Part shown: one piece after another, positions 2,573 through 34,710 of the stretch
Position numbering within the stretch: the first letter of the stretch is position 1
Layout: each line of letters opens with the position of its first letter
Source: Camelus ferus
Taxonomy: Eukaryota
DNA length: 64,000 nt
Direction of reading: 5' to 3'
Assembly: GCF_009834535.1 (NCBI RefSeq)
Contig: NC_045705.1
Coordinates: 56,172,001-56,236,000, forward strand
Notes under the pieces: model-generated
Told to the model about the DNA's origin: nothing
The model's input: the letters and a program-made list of their open reading frames with translations, nothing else
Database searches by the model: none
Program-made: the position numbers and the translations under genes

Positions 2573-3235
2573 GTAAGACATATCCTTTATTTCCATTTTT
2601 CTTCCATTTCCATTCACTACTTTTCTCACTAGTTTAATTTCCCAGACCTTCCATTAAAAGTATTTTAAATTTCTGATAAAGCTCTTAAATACTTTGATCC
2701 TTGGATAACATATATGTAAAACATGTAAAATTAATGTTCTTCTTGAACTTTTTTTTAATATTAGAGATGATTTTTGCTCAGAGACTGGCCAAAAGTCTTT
2801 CAAATAAATGGTAGTTGGTAATTGATGTTGCTGTTTTCAGTACTCTTCTTATCTTATATAATAATGACTAAATACTAATACAATGATTGATTTTAATCCT
2901 TTAAAGTAATTTTTAATATTTTGATGGTTTAATATTTTGATAAATTTTGATAAATCCATGTGCTTATTGATTTGTTATTGTCCATCCTGTGTGTCAATCC
3001 CTGTTTTGTCGTTCAGTCAAGTGGAACTGATTGCCATAATTGTATTTAGAGGCTAGCAGAACCTTAAATTGGTCAGAAGGGTTGGGGGAGGTGTCTATTG
3101 GTGATGATTGCAATAATGAGAGAAGGTAGCTAATTAAGTGTTCTTATACTATCTTTCAAAGCCACAGAAAACTATCCAGTGACCTACAGATTGGGTGAGC
3201 ATACATTCCTGAAGACCTATGCATTACCAAATAGG

Positions 3236-4162
3236 ATGTTCCTTCCCAATGACACCCAGTTTCACCTCTTCTCCTTCTTGTTGCTGGGAATCCCTGGAAT
3301 GGAAACACTCCACATCTGGATTGGCTTTCCCTTTTGTGCTGTGTATGTGATTGCACTCCTAGGGAACTTCACCATCCTGTTTGTGATCCAGGCTGAGCAC
3401 AGCCTACACCAGCCTATGTTCTACTTCCTGGCCATGTTGGCTACCATTGATTTGGGTCTCTCCACAGCCACCATTCCTAAGATGCTTGGGATCTTCTGGT
3501 TCAACCTCAGAGAGATCATCTTTGAAGCCTGCCTCACCCAGATGTTTTTCATTCACAACTTCACACTTATGGAATCTGCAGTCCTTTTGGCAATGGCTTA
3601 TGACCGCTATGTGGCCATCTGCAACCCACTCAGATATAGCACCATCCTCACCAACAAAGTTGTCTCTGTGATTGGCCTTGGTGTGTTAGTGAGGGCATTT
3701 ATTTTTGTGATTCCATTTGTATTTCTCATTTTGCGGTTGCCCTTCTGTGGGAATCATGTCATTCCTCATACCTACTGTGAACACATGGGTCTTGCTCGCC
3801 TATCTTGTGCCAGTATCAAGATCAATATTATTTATGGATTATGTGCAATTTGTAATCTAGTATTTGACATCATAGCGGTTGCCCTTTCTTATGTTCAGAT
3901 ACTCCGTGCTGTTTTTCGTCTTCCTTCCCATGAAGCCCGACTCAAATCCCTCAACACCTGTGGTTCTCATGTTTTTGTAATTCTTGCCTTTTATACACCA
4001 GCCCTCTTTTCCTTTATGACACATCGCTTTGGACAAAATGTTCCCCGCTATATTCACATACTTTTGGCCAATCTTTATGTCGTAGTACCACCAATGCTCA
4101 ATCCGGTTATATATGGAGTCAGAACTAAGCAGATCTATGATCGTGTGAAGACAATACTGTGA
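3236..4162 (+). CDS. OR52E2: Olfactory receptor 52E2 (class I OR, 308 aa)
   Basis: Intact 7TM ORF with NDT glycosylation site, [35 protein letters not shown] and PPMLNPVIY. Closely matches recalled human OR52E2 ([10 protein letters not shown]..., [20 protein letters not shown]). First ATG is 3236; the ORF track begins at a GTG. Acceptor CAG at 3165-3167. Confidence 0.93.
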
Positions 4163-9969: not shown

Positions 9970-10180
9970 CACAGTGGCTGTTTTGGAATCCAGGCTCCAT
10001 GTGGTACTAGCTGCCTGATCTAAGGAAACATAATTTGTATCTGAATGTCTCATTTTTCTCAATTGTGGCAGGATAAAAATAAAACCGGAGCCATAGGATT
10101 ACTGCTAAAATGAAATCAAAAAGTATTTGAAACCTGTGCCTGATACACAATGAGAGCTTTAGAAATATTAGCTATTATAT
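9970..10180. mobile_element. MIR
   Basis: gaatccaggctccatgtggtactagctg...ctcatttttctcaattgtgg...cctgatacacaatgagagctttagaaatattagctattat. Confidence 0.6.
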
Positions 10181-11404
10181 GCTTTTGAGTAATTTTTTTC
10201 TTTATTATTAATTACACATTTAAAATCATACTGATTTCAAATACACTCTGTTTTGATACTCATACCCAAGTTTGTGGACATTTCTCTGTTACTCTTGACT
10301 GATAGTCTTCAAAGTGTATCATCCAATTTTGAGCATATTAGAGCATTTACTCAATTATAGTTTTAACTAAAAATACAGTAGGACTATATTTTCCAATTAA
10401 ATTTGAGAATAATACTAAAGCAATAATGTTAAATCTGTTCCAAAAATAGCATTGGTCTCTGAGACAATGAACATAATAATAACTTTCTTAACAGTTTAAG
10501 TCCATGCTATGTGTCAGACAGTGTTAGCCCTTTGCTCATATTAATGCTTTTCCTTACAAAAAATATAATTCCCCTCCCACTTACGCAGGAGACCCCCCCT
10601 CCCAGCATTGCAGAGTTAGTTATTATAAGTTAAATACCCAGTGTTTTGTCATAGAATATAGGTGGTACATAAGCTGTCGTAAACCTACCCTACAAGCTTC
10701 ATCCCCACTTCAATCTCAGTATTAACCATACTGCTCTACCTTACACGTGAATCTGCAAAAATAAGGTTTTGTCAAATCTCTGTGATTATCCCCATGTTGT
10801 TTTCTCTTCATGAGATGCCTTTGTGTACTAACAGAAAAGTAGTTTTAGGATTCCATGCTATTCATTCACTTATATATGATATCTGAGCATTTATTCACTC
10901 CCTGAATAGAAATTACCCCTTCTTATTCAGAGATTTGATTGTATTTCATAGACTTATATGTTTATCTCTCAACATGCTTCATTGCAGAGATGCTGTGTTC
11001 TCTCAACACACCAGTTTTTATAAGGCAAATTACATTTATAGCCAAAGTATACAAATAACATTAAGAAATTAAGAAATTGTTCTTAAAAGAGAGAGAGAGA
11101 GAGATTTGATATGACCAAAGTACATCCATCACTGTTTTCTAAATGAATAGTGCTTCTATAAAACATATAGGGAATATTTTTAATGAGATGGATATGTATT
11201 TAGTTTTAAACATACTGAATTTCTAGTATTTTGTAAGAATACATTTTTCTTCCACTTAGTCCCCTGGCCTCTTTCTTTCACTTTACTTCCTGTTTCTAAC
11301 TACTCTACTAAGCCAATCAATCAACCCTTCAATTAAACCAATAAGAAAAAAGCTGTTTGTACTCTAAAAGTAAGTGAAATGGAGTACTCAACTAGGTTAT
11401 GAAA

Positions 11405-11940: not shown

Positions 11941-12876
11941 TTATTTTGGGATGAATATTCTAAGCACCCTTTCACGGATCTGCTTGGTCCTGACTCCATA
12001 GATAACAGGGTTGAGCATTGGTGGAATAACCACATAGAGATTGGCCAGGAGGATATGAATGTAGCGGGGAACATTCTGGCCAAAACGGTGTGTCATAAAA
12101 GAGAAGAGGGCTGGGATGTAAAAGGCCAAAATTACACAAACATGGGAACCACAGGTGCATAGAGACTTGAGCCTGGCCTCACGGGAGGGGAGACGGAAAA
12201 CAGCACAGAGAATTTGGACATAGGAGAGAGCAATGGCCATGATGTCAAATCCCAGGATAGCAATGGTCCCCAGACCATATATGATGTTGACCCTGATACT
12301 TGCACAGGCCAGACGAGCAAGCCCCATGTGCTCACAGTATGTGTGAGGAATGATGTGGTGTCCACAGAAGGGCAGTCGCAAGATGAGGAATACAAAGGGA
12401 AACACACAGAATAAAGATCTCCCAACCACCCCAAAGCCAATAAGAGATACTGTCTTGTTAGTAAGGATTGTGCTATAACGAAGGGGGTTACAAATAGCTA
12501 CATAGCGGTCATAAGCCATGGCCAGAAGGACTACTGACTCCATGCCAGTAAAGATGTGAATGAAAAACATTTGAGTGAGGCAGGCATCAAAAATGATCTC
12601 CCTGAGGCTGAACCAGAAGATGCCCAGCATCTTAGGGATGGTGGCTGTGGACAGTCCCAAGTCAATGGTAGCCAGCATCGCCAGGAAGTAGAACATGGGC
12701 TGGTGGAGGCTGTGCTCAGTCTGGATGACAAACAAGATGGTGAAGTTTCCTATGAGTGCAATCAGATACACAGCACAAAAAGGAAAGCCAATCCAGATGT
12801 GAATGTTTTCCAGTCCTGGGATGCCCAGCAGCAGGAAGGAGGAGGGGTGGAACTGGGTGTCATTGGAAAGAGGCAT
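11941..12876 (-). CDS. Olfactory receptor, OR52E subfamily (311 aa; in-frame alternative ATG at 12894)
   Basis: Intact [13 protein letters not shown]... with all OR motifs. Clearly paralogous to OR52E2, but the exact orthologue cannot be assigned. Splice acceptor tttttccag| at about 12970. Confidence 0.92.
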
Positions 12877-13547
12877 CTTGGCTTGTGATTTCATTTGAAT
12901 GTGTTCACTGCAGATGTGTGCTGACCCATATTGGGAGGGACCAGTCTGTGACCATTAAGTTTTACAGTACTGGAAAAAAACAAAAACCAAATATCCTACC
13001 TGTTTATCCCCATAGCAGAAACCTCATCAATAGCCTTTTTGCCAGAATCATTGAAATCCTCTGTCATAATAAAATTATTCCAATTGAAATTTAGTCACCG
13101 AAAACTGATTAATTTTATTACTCTAAATCTTTGTTTCACAGAAACAAAGAGGGAGGGAATAAGAGACTAGAAAGTAGGATATCATGTAATGTTAAGAATG
13201 ACTTTAGTGGGACCTCTTCATGGTAACACATCACTAACTGTGTCCCATGACTTTAAAGTGTATGCTTTCTGCCAAGAGTGTGGACTGCTAAGAAAGGAGG
13301 CTAGAGGAATGAAAGTGTGATCACTGTTGGGTAGAAAAGATTATGAGTGGCAACCAAACATTGTTTCTTATCAAATTACTATTTAATCTCAAGTATCTAC
13401 CTTCTTTACAATTTAATAGATGTTTATACAGAAGATATTGATGTTCTGAACAGTGAGATATATTTCTATTTCTCTGTCTCCATATATAGAAATAGGAACA
13501 AGTGATACACTTACAACCATCCCGTACTCATACAACCATTTTTTTTT

Positions 13548-17259: not shown

Positions 17260-17760
17260 AATGAATACAGTGTTTAAATGAACCCAAGAATAAATTAACT
17301 CAGAATTCCATGAAGATATTTTTAACAATTGCAGAATGACAACAGTTTTTTTTAAAACAAATTATTGTAAAGAACAAAAGAAGAGCAAATAAATTATTGA
17401 AGGATAATCAGCTATAAAAGTTATTCAAATACATCATAAATCTGTAGTGATGAAAACATTGTGATACTAGTCCAAGAATAAACAGACAAGCTGATTATAT
17501 TAATAAAAAGCAGATTCTTGTACAAATTGAAATTCAATTTGAAGAAAAAATAAGTACAATTAAGTTCTGAAGTGTTGAGTTATTAGATCAATTATGTTAT
17601 AAAAATAAGTTAGGAATGGAAACAGAGAAGTAGTTAATTTCCCACCCTACATTTGACACCAAAATGAATTACAATTAGATTAGAATGAAATATAAAAATG
17701 AATGCATAAACATAAATACACATACACAAATCCCATGGAATAGATGTTGGAATGTTAGTA
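17260..17760 (+). mobile_element. Degenerate L1 ORF2 fragment
   Basis: A-rich; tacatcataaatctgtagtgatgaaaacattgtgatactagtccaagaataaacagaca matches L1 ORF2. Confidence 0.55.
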
Positions 17761-17859
17761 TATAATAAAGTAATGCAAAGCCATAAGTCTGAAAGTTATT
17801 GGAGGCTGTGCTATAGGTAATATAATCTGTAATGATTTCATTATAAATTTAATCTACCA

Positions 17860-18020
17860 GATAAACAACAAAGTCCTACTGTATAGCGCAGAGAACTATA
17901 TTCAATACCTTGTAATGCCATATAATAAAAAAGAATATATATGTAAAAATGAATCACTATGTTGTATACCAGAAATTAACATATTGTAAATTGACTATAC
18001 TTCAATAAAAAATTAGACAA
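17860..18020 (+). mobile_element. Heavily 5'-truncated, lineage-specific L1 3' tail
   Basis: gataaacaacaaagtcctactgtatagc...aaattgactatacttcaataaaaa with a perfect 15-bp TSD AAATTTAATCTACCA (17845-17859, 18021-18035). Confidence 0.85.
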
Positions 18021-19123
18021 AAATTTAATCTACCATATAAAAATAAAGTAAATATAAAGAGTTCATAGGAAAGTGTTGATATGCAAAATACATTCAAATA
18101 ACTCTGTGATGAGACTTTTAGGAAGCTAGGCAAAAAATTTGGTGAAGTGGGAAGGAAATTACAATAAATAAGAAACAAATACAAGAAGCAAGAATATGAT
18201 CCATTCAATCAGTAACCTACTACCTAACAATTCTAAGTATACAACCTTTAGAAAATGTTCAAATATGCACAAAAAGTATGTCACAACATTGATTCTAAAT
18301 TAAAAGTAACTAAAATATTATACATATCACCAAAAGTTGAAGAGATAAGTAAAATGCAAATGAAAGTTTCTACTACATTTCAAAAGGAAATAACTATATC
18401 CCACATGTATCAACACAGATAATCTCTAAATTTAATATTAAGTGCAACAATTGTCTGTGAAATAATACACAGTACATTACCATATGAATTAAAAATTAAA
18501 ATTCCACATCCACCTCCCCCCACTGAAATTATTGAATTTAAAATGATAAATTTAGACTCTAAGAAAGATTTTTTAAAAAGCATGTGGTAGTCACTCTGTC
18601 TCTGAGGATGAGAAAAAAAAAAAAAACTGAAACTAGATTGGAGTAGTAGTCATAGGTTATTTCAACTTAAATCCCTCATATATTTGATTAAAAATACCAT
18701 TTAAGATAAATAAATCATAGTAACAATAGTTTTTAATTCCACATTATGGAAACAGAGTGCTTTGTTGTATGTTTCCTTGTCTTACTTTTAAGCTAAGGGA
18801 AAAATAGAGACCTTAAAATCTAGGGGGGAAAAGCAATGTTAACAAGAATAATGATAGGAAAGGTCATTGCTTGGACTATTCACGCTCACTCAAAATGAAG
18901 TAATGCAAACAGTTCTCACTGTCACAATAGAAATCAGTCCTTGAACTTAAAATATTTTGAAGACTATTCCAACCACAGAATCAATAGGGAGCCAAGATCA
19001 AATAAATCCCCTGGAATGGAATTGGCAGCACTAAATTTTGACAGAGAAAGGTCTTTGCTCAAAGAACAAACCAACATTTCTTGCTGGATCAAAATGCTTC
19101 TTAAACAAAGGAGGCAAGGGTCC

Positions 19124-20059
19124 TTATTTTTTAATAAGCACACAGAGTACTCGCTCTCGTATCTGTTTGGTCCTCACACCATAGATGATGGGGTTGAGTG
19201 AAGGTGGGATAACCAAATAGAGGTTGGCAACAAGAATGTGAATGTAGCGGGGTATGCTGTGTCCAAATCGGTGAGTGAGGAAAGAGAAGACTGAGGGGAT
19301 ATAGAAAACACAAATGACCCCAACATGGGAGCCACACGTGCTTAGGGCTTTTAGCCGTGCATCTTGGGATGGGAGGCGAAGGACAGCATGGAGAATATAA
19401 ATATAGGAGATGCCAACAAGGACTAGGTTTAGGACAAAGAAGAAAACAACAAAGAGCCCATAAGTACCATTGATGCGGATGTTTCCACAGGATAGTTTTG
19501 CGATACCCATGTGCTCACAGTAGGAATGAGCTATCACATGAGCCTGACAAAAGGGTAGGCGGTAGATGAGATAGATCATGGGAAGTGTCAGCAGGACTGG
19601 ACGAATTACAATGCACATGCTGATGCCCACCAGCACCCGGGATGTCAGGATGGTCATGTAGTGGAGTGGAGCACAGATTGCTACATAGCGGTCAAAGGCC
19701 ATGGCCACCAGGACCTCAGCCTCCATGCCAGTGAAGGCATGGATCAGGAACATCTGGGCCACACAAGCCCCAAAGTTAATCTCATGAGCATCAAACCAGA
19801 AGATACCCAGCATGCGGGGGACAGAGGTTGTTGAAAGGGCCAAATCAATGGTTGAAAGGATGGCCAGAAAGTAGAACATAGGCTCCCGGAGGGTCTGCTC
19901 CATCTTGATGACTAGCAGAATTGTGACATTGCCTAGTAAAGCCACAAGGTAAACAAAGCAGAAAGGCAGGGAGATCCAGGCATGGACCTCTTCCAGGCCT
20001 GGGATTCCAATGAGGAAAAATGTGGTTGGGTGAAAAAAACTCCTATTGTGATAAAACAT
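19124..20059 (-). CDS. OR52J3: Olfactory receptor 52J3, copy A (311 aa)
   Basis: [24 protein letters not shown]...[12 protein letters not shown]...THRFG matches recalled human OR52J3. Splice acceptor cctcctag| at 20095/20094 makes the ORF-track ATG at 20173 intronic. Confidence 0.92.
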
Positions 20060-20726
20060 CCTTCCAAATAACAGAGTAGGAGATGTTGTCACTCCTAGGA
20101 GGAGGAAAAAAAAAGTTGAGTAAGAAATAGTTATGAAAATTATTACCTTAGTGCTTCTATATATGGTGAACATGAAAAAGTTTGCTATTTCGAAGGTTAT
20201 ATTAATTTTCTTTTTAATTTCTAAATTGAACCATTCTCATTTGGGGCATGTCTCAAAGGGCTTAATCCTTAGACAGATTTAATCCTAATTTTTTTAACAT
20301 GTAAGGTTTATCAGCATACCCATGGCAGAGTTATAAGATATAGGACATAATATTATGTATGGAATAATTTAGTATTCCCCGTATCTTTTGTGAAGTCCTT
20401 CTCTAAAGAGGGTCACATGAAAAATCAATGATACACATATGGAAATGCAGGCATAACCCAAAAGGAGACAGATAGATGAGAAAGTAAAGTCATAGGCACA
20501 AATGTACGACACTCTCATACTTAGAAAACCCTGAAATTATCTAATGATCCATTCATCATTTGTTGAAAACCCAGAAACTTTCTAATGATCCATTCATCAT
20601 TTATTGACACAGAGAAAATACCAAAACCATACGTAATATCCTGTTTAAAAGACTGCAACAAAGTATCAGAGATACATATTATCACAAAGAAAAGCACAGA
20701 CACTCTGGAGCACACACTGGCTAGTC

Positions 20727-24130: not shown

Positions 24131-24865
24131 TATATTATACCATCTCCTTTTTCTGTTTAGTTTAATCTTGAGCCTATTTTGTTTCAATAAGCCTATAGAA
24201 GTTTCCAGAAGCATACCGTAAGGTCTTCACTTATCATGTGCTTGTAACTACAAACACACCTGAAAATATATGTATATGAGGTTGGCACTGCTTCTTCTGA
24301 GTGCCTGCTAAGGCACCTCAACCCTACCCTTCATTTCAGTGAGTGGGTCTCTCTAACCATAGTAATGGTTCTGGTTTCTTATTTTCAGAGATAGTTGGGA
24401 GGCTGAGGAGTTGATATCCACACTATCAACTAGCCTGCATGGTTCTGCTTGAACTTGCATTCTGACTCATGATGTGCGATCGTGTCTCTTTTTCATGTTC
24501 CCATTTACTGGGTGCAGAAGACAATCGCAGGCTTATTCTGATACTGCCTGCAGTCAACCTACATTGTTCCATACTATCACAATGTAGTACAAACTACGTT
24601 GTTCTGTTTTGGTCCTATTTAGAAGAGGAACCCCAGAACTTATTGCAAAGGGTTATGGGAAAATGGGTGGGAATTACTTTTATGAAGAGAATAAAAATTT
24701 CCCCATGTGAAGAAATGGATGGAATGTCCTCATTAAGCCACATGTTACTTTCTCAGCCAGCCTTCTGATTCTCACTCTGGATTTACTCCTGAGATATCAA
24801 ACACTGAATTGGAAACAACTCTGCCCCTAGGTCAGTAAAGGAGTCCTATGCATGTTGCCAAGCAG

Positions 24866-25820
24866 CTAGAAGACACTAAAATCACCTTCTCCTAAGGGCA
24901 CATCAAAATTACAACTATTTACAGAGCAACTATTTATGAGAATGACTAGCAGAAAGTACTTTCCAGAACTGAGGATAAAGAGCTCAATGAGATAGGTAGG
25001 AGGGGTGGAGATGAGGTATATAGTCAGGCAGGATTCACATCCCAGGTAGGGAACCCACAAATGTGAAGAATATCATAACCACAGTAGGTCCTCCCCAAAG
25101 AGTGAGGAGTCTAAACCCCACGTTGGACTCCCAGGCCAGGAGTTCAGCACTGGGGAGAGGAGCTCCCAGAAAGTCTGACTTTGAAAACCAGAGAGGCTTA
25201 ACTTTGGGAGAGCTGGAGGGCTATAGGAAACTGAGAATCTGCTCTTAAATGCACATATGAAATCTCACATTCTCCATGTCTCAGCATAGAGGCAGTAATT
25301 TGAAAGGAGCCTGGGTCAGGCCCACTTGCTGACCTTGAACAGCCTCCTAGAGAGGAAAGAGGCAACTGGGACTCCCCGGAGACAGGAAAGCTGGCAGCAG
25401 CTATGTTTAGGAACTCATTCAGTGGCGATGACCATGCCACTAGCAAGCAACATTTTGGAATTCTCCCTCTAGCCTGTTAGTGTCAGGCATTTTCCCTGCC
25501 CACCAGCAGGCCTTCAACAGCCACATGCCCCTGGCCAGCTGTATGTGGATCCTGCCCCGAATATCAGCAGGACTGATAAGTTAGCCAGTCGAGGAAGGCC
25601 TGTCCCAACCTCAGCAGGCCTGCAGCCACCACATGAAACAGGGCAGCACATCCAAATGGGTCAGAAGCCAGCCTTGTTTACCAGTGTGCCACAATACTTA
25701 GCACCCTTACAACAGAAATACACACAGCCCACATAAGGGGCACCCCTAGAGCATATAGTTCTAGTGATCAGAGGGGAGCATGCTCTTGAGCCCCACAGGT
25801 CATCTTCTACATAAGGTCAT
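24866..25820 (+). mobile_element. L1 5' UTR fragment (laurasiatherian L1M2-like), truncated before ORF1
   Basis: GC-richer segment with catcaaaattacaactatttacagagcaact, gtctgactttgaaaaccag and cacccctagagcatatagttct...cttctacataagg, recalled as L1 5' UTR. Confidence 0.6.
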
Positions 25821-28790: not shown

Positions 28791-29057
28791 GAATCTTATG
28801 CTATCAAGATCCTGTGTGAAGACATGCAAATAGAGGTGACACAGCTCCCTTTCAGGACAGCCCATTAGCCTTTGAATGAGAGATTCAATGAAGTTCCCAC
28901 AAGTCTTAGAATCCATTAGTCAGCACTTAGAAACAAATCAACTTGTATTGCAATCTGGCAGCCATACATTAGAACCAGGAGATACTTGTTAAGGCAAGAA
29001 CACAAAAATCTTCCTAGAGGTATTGAAATCCTTAGTAAAAGAATGCAGCCAGGTGTC

Positions 29058-29993
29058 TTATTTCTTAATAAAGGCGCAGAGTACTCGCTCTCGTATCTGT
29101 TTGGTCCTCACACCATAGATGATGGGGTTGAGTGAAGGTGGGATAACCAAATAGAGGTTGGCAACAAGAATGTGAATGTAGCGGGGTATGCTGTGTCCAA
29201 ATCGGTGAGTGAGGAAAGAGAAGACTGAGGGGATATAGAAAACACAAATGACCCCAACATGGGAGCCACACGTGCTTAGGGCTTTTAGCCGTGCATCTTG
29301 GGATGGGAGGCGAAGGACAGCATGGAGAATATAAATATAGGAGATGCCAACAAGGACTAGGTTTAGGACAAAGAAGAAAACAACAAAGAGCCCATAAGTA
29401 CCATTGATGCGGATGTTTCCACAGGATAGTTTTGCGATACCCATGTGCTCACAGTAGGAATGAGCTATCACATGAGCCTGACAAAAGGGTAGGCGGTAGA
29501 TGAGATAGATCATGGGAAGTGTCAGCAGGACTGGACGAATTACAATGCACATGCTGATGCCCACCAGCACCCGGGATGTCAGGATGGTCATGTAGTGGAG
29601 TGGAGCACAGATTGCTACATAGCGGTCAAAGGCCATGGCCACCAGGACCTCAGCCTCCATGCCAGTGAAGGCATGGATCAGGAACATCTGGGCCACACAA
29701 GCCCCAAAGTTAATCTCATGAGCATCAAACCAGAAGATACCCAGCATGCGGGGGACAGAGGTTGTTGAAAGGGCCAAATCAATGGTTGAAAGGATGGCCA
29801 GAAAGTAGAACATAGGCTCCCGGAGGGTCTGCTCCATCTTGATGACTAACAGAATTGTGATATTGCCCAGTAAAGCCACAAGGTAAACAAAGCAGAAAGG
29901 CAGGGAGATCCAGGCATGGATCTCTTCCAGGCCTGGGATTCCAATGAGGAAAAATGTGGTTGGGTGAAAAACGCTTCTGTTGTGGTATATCAT
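29058..29993 (-). CDS. OR52J3: Olfactory receptor 52J3-like, copy B (311 aa)
   Basis: [11 protein letters not shown]...; core identical to copy A. First ATG is 29993 (the ORF track starts at TTG). Acceptor ccccatacag| at 30029/30028. Confidence 0.9.
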
Positions 29994-30670
29994 TCTGTTA
30001 CTAATCAAAGGAAGTGAAGCTGATCCTCCTGTATGGGGAAAAGTGAAAGAGAGAGAGAGATCAGAGGGAAAAGAATCTGGTATGTCAATTGCTGCTCACT
30101 GTTTTAGCATAGAGTCGATGTCATATTTACTATATAAATAGGCTTGTTACTAAAGGACATATATTGAATCATCCCCATAGCCATTTGATAGGCCAGGTCA
30201 AAGTGATGTTCAGAGTTTCTATTCTGCCTGCTGATTGAGCTCAAATTCTAAACATGAGACTTGCAGCAAACTCAATGCAGATTTCTAATAATTAAAGCTT
30301 GTCATTCACTATGAAAGTTATTGGAGGTGATTCTACTTTAGGAAATCCACTCTGGTGAATGACACTGGAAATATCAAGACTATATGTAGGACCAAGTTAA
30401 TACACTATAGAGACAGTCAAAAGTGTTTTAAGCAATCCATAAGGAAATAAATTATAGATCCAGGTGTATAGTTACTCACAATCAAAACCTGAATTCTTCT
30501 GGTTCCTCATTATTTACTGGCATAGAGAGACATACACAAAAACTCTCACCCAAGCCGAGTAGCCTCCCACAAACACCAAGTCAGGTTATAACAGACATAT
30601 TTTCATGTTCTCAGACAAGTGTTGGCCCCTTGAGATGCCTGGCCAGGAGCAGGGACACCCATTGTTCATG

Positions 30671-33768: not shown

Positions 33769-34710
33769 TCAACCTGGTTTCCCACATAATTTTGTAAGGA
33801 TCAGACTTCTAATCTGCTGACTCTTCACCGAGTACACAACGGGATTCATTAGAGGGGGAACCAGAAGGAAAGTATCAGCTATGACGACCCTAATAAGTGG
33901 GGAAACACTTTTGGCAAAGTGGTGAATAATAGCCAAGGTGACAATAGGCACATAGAAGATGAGCACAGCACAGATGTGGGAGATGCAAGTGTTGAGGACT
34001 TTGAGACAGCCCTTGTGTGAGGCAATGCTCAGAACAATTTTCAGGATCAGGACATAAGACACAGAAATACACACCAAGTCTAACATAGCCATTAGAGCCA
34101 CAAGTAATCCATAGATGATATTGACCCTGTTATCAGAGCAGGCCAGCTTCATGACATCCTGATGGAGGCAGTAGGAGTGGCATAGAAGGCTTTTCTTACA
34201 GAATTTTAGCCTCTTTAGAATAAAGGGGAAAGGAAAGACCAATAGGATACTTTTCACAGCAAATGCAAGGTCAACTTTCATGACTCTGGCACTGGTCAGA
34301 ATGGAGGTGTATCGCAGAGGGTTGTAGATAGCTATAAAGCGATCGATGGACATGATGAGAAGAACTGATGACTCCATAGTTGAGAATCCATGAATGAAAA
34401 ACTCCTGAGCAAAGCAAGCACCAGGGAAAATTCTAGTGACGTTGAACAAGAAGATTCTCAGCATGGTTGGAAGGGAGGAGATGGACAGTCCCAGATCAGA
34501 AAAGGCCAGCATGGAGAGGAAATAGTACATAGGCTCATGCAGAGAGGTCTCTGTTTCTATGAAAAAGAGGATGGTGCAGTTCCCCAAGATGGCAATGAGG
34601 TACATGAGGCACATTGGGATAGAGACCCAAATGTGAGCATGCTCCATGCCTGGGATCCCAGTCAGGAAGAAGGTAGAGATTTCCACTTCAGAGGTGTTAA
34701 AGATGGACAT
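33769..34710 (-). CDS. Olfactory receptor, OR51A subfamily (313 aa)
   Basis: Intact ORF. MSIFNTSEVEISTFFL, ACFAQEFFIHGFS, LIMSIDRF and CLHQDVMKLACSDN are OR51A-diagnostic (similar to recalled OR51A2/A4/A7). Acceptor ttgcag| at 34757/34756. Confidence 0.9.
   Translation of the reverse strand: MSIFNTSEVEISTFFLTGIPGMEHAHIWVSIPMCLMYLIAILGNCTILFFIETETSLHEPMYYFLSMLAFSDLGLSISSLPTMLRIFLFNVTRIFPGACFAQEFFIHGFSTMESSVLLIMSIDRFIAIYNPLRYTSILTSARVMKVDLAFAVKSILLVFPFPFILKRLKFCKKSLLCHSYCLHQDVMKLACSDNRVNIIYGLLVALMAMLDLVCISVSYVLILKIVLSIASHKGCLKVLNTCISHICAVLIFYVPIVTLAIIHHFAKSVSPLIRVVIADTFLLVPPLMNPVVYSVKSQQIRSLILTKLCGKPG

Follow-up and report, generated by a model that had tools for sequence, protein, structure and literature searches.

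Gene conversion as the probable origin of a 772-bp identical tract shared by two old OR52J3-type olfactory receptor paralogues in the wild Bactrian camel

Introduction

Two olfactory receptor genes in the wild Bactrian camel, Camelus ferus, raise the question of how neighbouring coding sequences can be identical over 772 bp when the DNA around them does not align at all. Both genes lie in a 64,000-nt stretch of the forward strand of contig NC_045705.1 (positions 56,172,001 to 56,236,000; NCBI RefSeq GCF_009834535.1), hereafter the window, to which all coordinates refer unless another sequence is named; the underlying assembly is the wild Bactrian camel genome BCGSAC_Cfer_1.0 (GCA_009834535.1; PMC8069558), with which the window agrees at 100% over 20.8 kb. 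The initial annotation of the window had proposed an ancient duplication followed by very recent conversion between the two loci, and had named a collapse of the assembly as the main alternative. Here we compare the pair with the corresponding loci of alpaca (L001), dromedary (L002), hippo (L005), horse (L006), banteng (Bos javanicus, L007) and stoat (L008), as well as with two other camel assemblies. We conclude, with a probability of roughly 0.88, that non-crossover interlocus (non-allelic) gene conversion between old tandem OR52J3 paralogues explains the tract.

Results

Gene A (19124-20059, minus strand), of the OR52J3 type, and its OR52J3-like paralogue gene B (29058-29993, minus strand) are both intact, each with an open reading frame of 311 aa (proteins P0124 and P0125, respectively), and are arranged head to tail, 9,934 bp apart. 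Their start codons lie at 20059-20057 and 29993-29991, which corrects an earlier placement. In protein searches the best matches, from many mammals, are OR52J3 and OR52J3-like sequences, the Pfam domains found are 7tm_4 and 7tm_1, and among solved structures 8HTI, a consensus OR52 receptor, comes nearest (E=3.5e-133, residues 4-311); judged by sequence similarity, A and B are class I olfactory receptors of family 52, OR52J3 type. In the usual layout of an olfactory receptor gene, an upstream exon that is non-coding is joined by splicing to one coding exon. A splice-acceptor AG preceded by a pyrimidine tract is predicted, by reading the sequence, at 20095-20096 for the coding exon of A and at 30029-30030 for that of B (both on the minus strand), in either case exactly 35 nt before the ATG and again with an offset of 9,934 bp; A and B may thus share the same upstream-exon layout, with 35 nt of 5' UTR in the coding exon. 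The window also holds another OR52-type pair, which is inverted (3235-4156 on the plus strand and 11956-12877 on the minus strand), 7.8 kb apart, 81% identical over 922 nt and without a long identical run.

Compared base by base, 19143-19914 of A and 29077-29848 of B (both on the minus strand) agree over 772 bp with zero mismatches at an offset of 9934, exactly as had first been claimed. This run corresponds to CDS 146-917, or 82% of the coding sequence, and sets the largest possible extent of a conversion in A, with the B stretch as its template copy; the N runs of the window are situated elsewhere, outside both tracts. The terminal mismatches, put at about 5 and about 11 in the initial annotation, number precisely five within the last 19 coding nt (19130, 19138-19140 and 19142) and 11 within the first 145 (19915, 19927, 19934, 19987, 20038, 20039, 20042, 20045, 20051, 20054 and 20056). 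The bases that bound the tract, 19142 and 19915, are A-specific and fixed in all camelid A genes. Under a uniform null, a gap of 772 bp among 16 randomly placed coding differences has a probability of ~1e-11. The identical run spans 56 of the 74 sites that are polymorphic among camelids, or 179 of 221 when outgroups are included, and a permutation of the Sawyer/GENECONV type, the program by which the initial annotation would have checked the tract, matched the observed run in none of 20,000 shuffles of the camelid-polymorphic sites (P < 5e-5). The two proteins differ at six residues (F2I, F8V, V25I, V45I, V307A and L308F), which the alignment with 8HTI assigns to the N- and C-terminal tails and to TM1 or its immediate vicinity; the protein differences are indeed confined to the termini, as had been stated. 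In class I olfactory receptor structures, residues at such positions in the N-terminal tail, TM1 and the C-terminal tail are not known to line the odorant pocket.

Beyond the coding sequence the likeness soon ends, in keeping with the poorly matching UTR flanks reported earlier. Ungapped identity between A and B is 52-70% over the 50 bp adjoining the CDS and falls to 20-38%, the random level, further out. Gapped blastn of the two loci returned a single block, 19092-20062 against 29026-29996 (both on the minus strand; 971 bp, 97.0%, no gaps), which comprises the CDS and ~32 nt of 3' flank, and no second block of homology between both loci. The same limitation of A/B homology to the coding exon is found in hippo, stoat, alpaca and dromedary, and no A-to-B flank alignment was obtained in any of these four species or in C. 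ferus. The A-specific and B-specific flanks each match a separate orthologue in alpaca, dromedary, hippo and stoat: in hippo, and likewise in stoat, the B flanks belong to gene 1 and the A flanks to gene 2. The horse gene examined has B flanks. Across alpaca, dromedary and C. ferus, all differences between A and B in the flanks and terminal coding bases are fixed. Because separate orthologues of the A and B flanks exist in hippo and stoat, flank orthology dates the A/B duplication to before the split of carnivores and artiodactyls, and the duplication is as ancient as had been supposed. Codon 2 (TTT in A, codons starting with A in B) has remained paralogue-specific throughout that period.

The same flanks bear on the simplest rival account, a recent duplication of a single gene with no conversion. 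Such a duplication would explain the identical cores and would have left flanks that are equally identical, but the flanks are unalignable beyond ~35 nt from the CDS, and each type has its own orthologues in the four species named above. These comparisons refute a simple recent duplication, to which we give virtually no credence.

Two other observations concern the loci used for comparison. The OR52J3 gene of Bos javanicus (L007 10001-10936) is bordered by A-type sequence upstream and by B-type sequence downstream, and the A-upstream region occurs three times within 20 kb (L007:770-19594), one copy having a truncated CDS; this mixed arrangement looks as though A and B had crossed over unequally in the cattle lineage. 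In dromedary, where the genes lie at L002:14716-15651 and 24648-25583, the deposited protein P0134 (L002:10001-15651) is a 635 aa fusion of gene B with a neighbouring olfactory receptor, the orthologue of window 33769-34710, and gene A is annotated from an internal Met (251 aa); both open reading frames are intact, and the fusion and the short gene A are annotation artefacts.

The histories of tract and flanks are discordant. In the comparison of core and flank trees that the initial annotation had favoured, the flanks follow orthology whereas the tract groups paralogues by lineage: in the maximum-likelihood tree of the core, A pairs with B in stoat (100/100) and in hippo (100/100), all four ferus/Bactrian copies adjoin dromedary B, and constraining all A copies to one clade costs 195 lnL and is rejected (p-AU 4e-83). 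Over the 772-bp core, A and B differ at 0 positions in the window, 1 in a second camel assembly (GCA_048773025.1), 16 in dromedary, 23 in hippo, 35 in alpaca and 59 in stoat; the camel and hippo orthologues differ at ~76-80 positions over the same stretch. The fall from 35 in alpaca and 16 in dromedary to none in C. ferus bears out the proposal of a recent interlocus conversion, and this latest event is one of many A/B conversions across mammals.

The core is also the transmembrane bundle, and strong purifying selection on it, combined with relaxed termini and without any exchange of sequence, might be thought to yield the same picture. Synonymous differences are beyond the reach of such selection, however, and they make up nine of the 17 differing core codons between A and B in dromedary and 18 of the 32 in alpaca; moreover, the cores cluster by species though the duplication predates the species. 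The synonymous-site pattern and the core tree refute purifying selection alone, and its probability is negligible.

The homogenisation of A and B is a mosaic that has gone in both directions. In alpaca (genes at L001:72-1007 and 10001-10936), B retains a B-type patch at CDS 291-381 that is common to horse, hippo and Bos, and A retains an A-type patch in TM5, at CDS 593-630, that is common to stoat A and accounts for five aa differences from B. Both patches were overwritten in the Camelus stem, and in alpaca such paralogue-specific patches have survived from a time before carnivores and artiodactyls split. The possibility that a third paralogue had donated these two alpaca-specific clusters of changes was considered and rejected; the patches match the B and A orthologues and are retained ancestral sequence. 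In hippo (L005:10001-10939 and 17301-18236) it is the termini of the two genes that are near identical, with 3/145 and 0/19 differences, against the 23 in the core; this pattern is opposite to that of the camels, and the conversion borders therefore differ between lineages. Both A and B of dromedary have C at CDS 200 (T67, not I67), as does no other species, through either a small separate conversion or parallel mutation.

The direction of the latest event can be gauged from dromedary. At the 16 core sites that differ between dromedary A and B, C. ferus has the B state at 14, and the remaining two are changes private to dromedary B, which makes B the donor and A the acceptor. Ferus A differs from dromedary A at 18 core sites, where 4.6 would be expected from the local divergence of 0.6% (P=2e-6), and ferus B differs from dromedary B at 6/772, which is about the local neutral rate. 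The smallest converted extent in A is 19169-19896 (minus strand; CDS 164-891, 728 bp), delimited by the outermost sites that are B-type in the A gene of the window but A-type in dromedary A and in the A gene of the older (2012) C. ferus assembly; the length of the tract lies between 728 and 772 bp, and its borders are fixed to within 44 bp in total. Among the 14 sites changed in A, counted by hand, seven are weak-to-strong, five strong-to-weak and two neutral, and no bias of the GC-biased kind is seen. Three ferus-specific derived bases, at CDS 195, 555 and 671, are common to A and B and hence predate the conversion, whose age the zero differences put at less than ~65% of the time elapsed since ferus and dromedary separated (P=0.05). 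The conversion dates to the lineage of the wild and domestic Bactrian camels, after the dromedary had split off. The spacing of A and B (9,934 bp in C. ferus, 9,932 in dromedary, 9,929 in alpaca and 9,933 in stoat) is unchanged in camelids and stoat, from which it follows that no crossover took place. Outside the main tract, A has one isolated B-type base at 19956 (minus strand; CDS 104), giving F35 in place of the S35 of other A genes; the base is C in the A genes of dromedary, alpaca and the 2012 ferus assembly, and T in all camelid B genes and the A gene of the window, and it stems either from a conversion patch of its own or from parallel mutation.

All of this presumes that the window is correctly assembled. 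An exact repeat of 772 bp is the kind of site at which assembly or polishing goes wrong, and reads from B could have been used to build or polish an A whose true core differs; the older short-read C. ferus assembly GCA_000311805.2 (CamFer1; PMC7468183) does disagree with the window at eight sites of gene A. Several lines of evidence argue against such an artefact. The second assembly, GCA_048773025.1, which is long-read and chromosome-level, has seven differences from the window over 20.8 kb and yields the same A and B, except for a single C>T at a CpG of A (CDS 558) inside the tract, and this private change implies that A and B were assembled separately there. At the tract borders A-type bases give way cleanly to B-type ones, with no mixture. 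Even GCA_000311805.2 has B-type sequence at CDS 427-803 of A, with the ferus-specific 555T and 671A included, and a B-type centre within A-type flanks is found in all three, that of the window included. Of the 30 words possible at the junction 19871-19930, 12 are diagnostic of the converted A; in a k-mer search with two sampled words, at least 20 runs, all from one organism, contain both, and two other organisms contain one word, a result that is no more than suggestive. A search for further camel assemblies by way of the downstream neighbour gene returned only the two already compared and a 1.7-kb Logan contig. The alternative of an assembly collapse, raised at the outset, is weakened by these results, and we judge it quite improbable.

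The disagreement with the older assembly has a pattern of its own. Its gene A (L009:19853-20756, equivalent to window 19156-20059) has A-type bases at CDS 104, 126, 164, 168, 177, 180, 195 and 891 and B-type bases confined to CDS 427-803, and its gene B is identical to that of the window. Eight differences from the A gene of the window in 904 bp compare with 0.8 expected from the flanks (P=1.6e-6), and seven of the eight are switches between A-type and B-type at the tract edges. In at least one animal or assembly, then, the tract is shorter, at most 695 bp, and the cause is either a polymorphism of tract length or a chimeric assembly over the repeat. A polymorphism would mean two A haplotypes among Bactrian-type camels, one with a tract within CDS 196-890 and the other with a tract of CDS 146-917, brought about by nested or independent conversions that possibly still segregate; this would refine the conversion reading and is not an alternative to it. 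The A-type bases of GCA_000311805.2 are those of dromedary A and must for that reason derive from real reads. On the other hand, a short-read de Bruijn assembly may mis-thread a repeat that is exact over >200 bp and leave a chimeric middle, the pattern comes from one such assembly, and the two sampled junction words are present in all listed runs of the one organism. We regard two haplotypes as possible, while leaning somewhat against them.

Gene conversion, the reading that we prefer, would have proceeded in the following steps. The flanks of the two paralogues have diverged beyond alignment, but their single coding exons were homogenised repeatedly. In the Bactrian lineage, after the dromedary split, a germline break in A would have been repaired from the B template. 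Unlike direction and timing, which are read from the comparisons above, the repair pathway is one that we infer, namely synthesis-dependent strand annealing or a similar non-crossover route, by which 728-772 bp of B would have been copied into A. Usable homology runs out close to the borders of the CDS, where the paralogue-specific mismatches cluster, and the tract would therefore have gone no further. Gene A now encodes the transmembrane core of B, from TM2 to TM7 with all loops, and retains its own N-terminal tail, TM1, C-terminal tail, 5' UTR with the predicted splice acceptor, and regulatory flanks.

Discussion

For the receptors, the conversion introduced P55Q, I161M, H195R, D219Y, F227L and N268S into A relative to dromedary A, and the base at CDS 104 adds S35F. 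The D219 of dromedary A replaces a tyrosine found in every other sequence compared. More generally, the unconverted A of Camelus has the unusual Q55P, Y219D and S268N (in dromedary and, in part, in the 2012 C. ferus assembly), and P55, being present in the 2012 ferus A as well as in dromedary A, is ancestral to the A gene of Camelus. It is tempting to speculate that conversion rescued a decaying A copy. The fuller version of this idea, in which the conversion still segregates with at least two tract lengths and rescued a decaying paralogue by erasing Q55P, Y219D and S268N, strikes us as unlikely; were a rescue true, the repeated homogenisation in stoat, hippo and camelids could reflect selection for two promoters serving one receptor, as opposed to mere proximity as its cause. 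That two promoters now drive essentially one receptor, which would hence be represented in more neurons, is a reasonable expectation from the gene structures, though the dosage effect, like the repair pathway, is inferred. Receptor specificity may be lost without pseudogenisation: Bactrian-type camels have two genes with one core, and alpaca A keeps its own TM5.

The pair also holds a warning for gene family studies: a phylogeny based on the coding sequences of OR52J3 would falsely show separate young duplications in camels, in hippo and in stoat, and the true history of the pair is given only by the flanks. It is an unusually well resolved case, with a donor, an acceptor, borders and a time window. 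If the two tract lengths are real alleles, they would represent an interlocus conversion segregating in a critically endangered species and would make a convenient marker. In the literature searched, we found no paper that links OR52J3 or camel olfactory receptors with gene conversion, and we regard the camel A/B pair as a clean but ordinary example of a well-known process, which adds no new principle.

Globin gene pairs offer the familiar precedent of old tandem duplicates that look young in gene trees, with homogenised coding sequences and outer regions that keep their age. Concerted evolution in the camel pair is of the same kind; the case differs in the gene family, and the mosaic in camelids is bidirectional. 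Closer in substance is the conversion among clustered olfactory receptor genes described for a primate chromosome 17 cluster (Sharon et al., 1999, Genomics 61:24-36; cited in PMC1794568), and PMC1794568 explicitly names gene conversion among olfactory receptors as a confounder of orthology. There too the partners are tandem paralogues that exchange sequence in a single coding exon between distinct flanks. In contrast to that cluster, the genes considered here are a class I OR52J3 pair in a camel, with zero differences over four-fifths of the CDS, and a sister species allows donor, acceptor and time window to be named. Interlocus gene conversion has likewise been well studied in mammalian segmental duplications (for instance PMC3790853, PMC4467073). 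There it is similarly one-way and non-crossover, covers a few hundred bp, and leaves a run of shared variants together with discordant trees for tract and flanks. Segmental duplications are long and young, whereas the camel duplicates arose no later than the carnivore-artiodactyl split, and their substrate for conversion is only a coding exon of ~1 kb, kept by selection and by earlier conversions.
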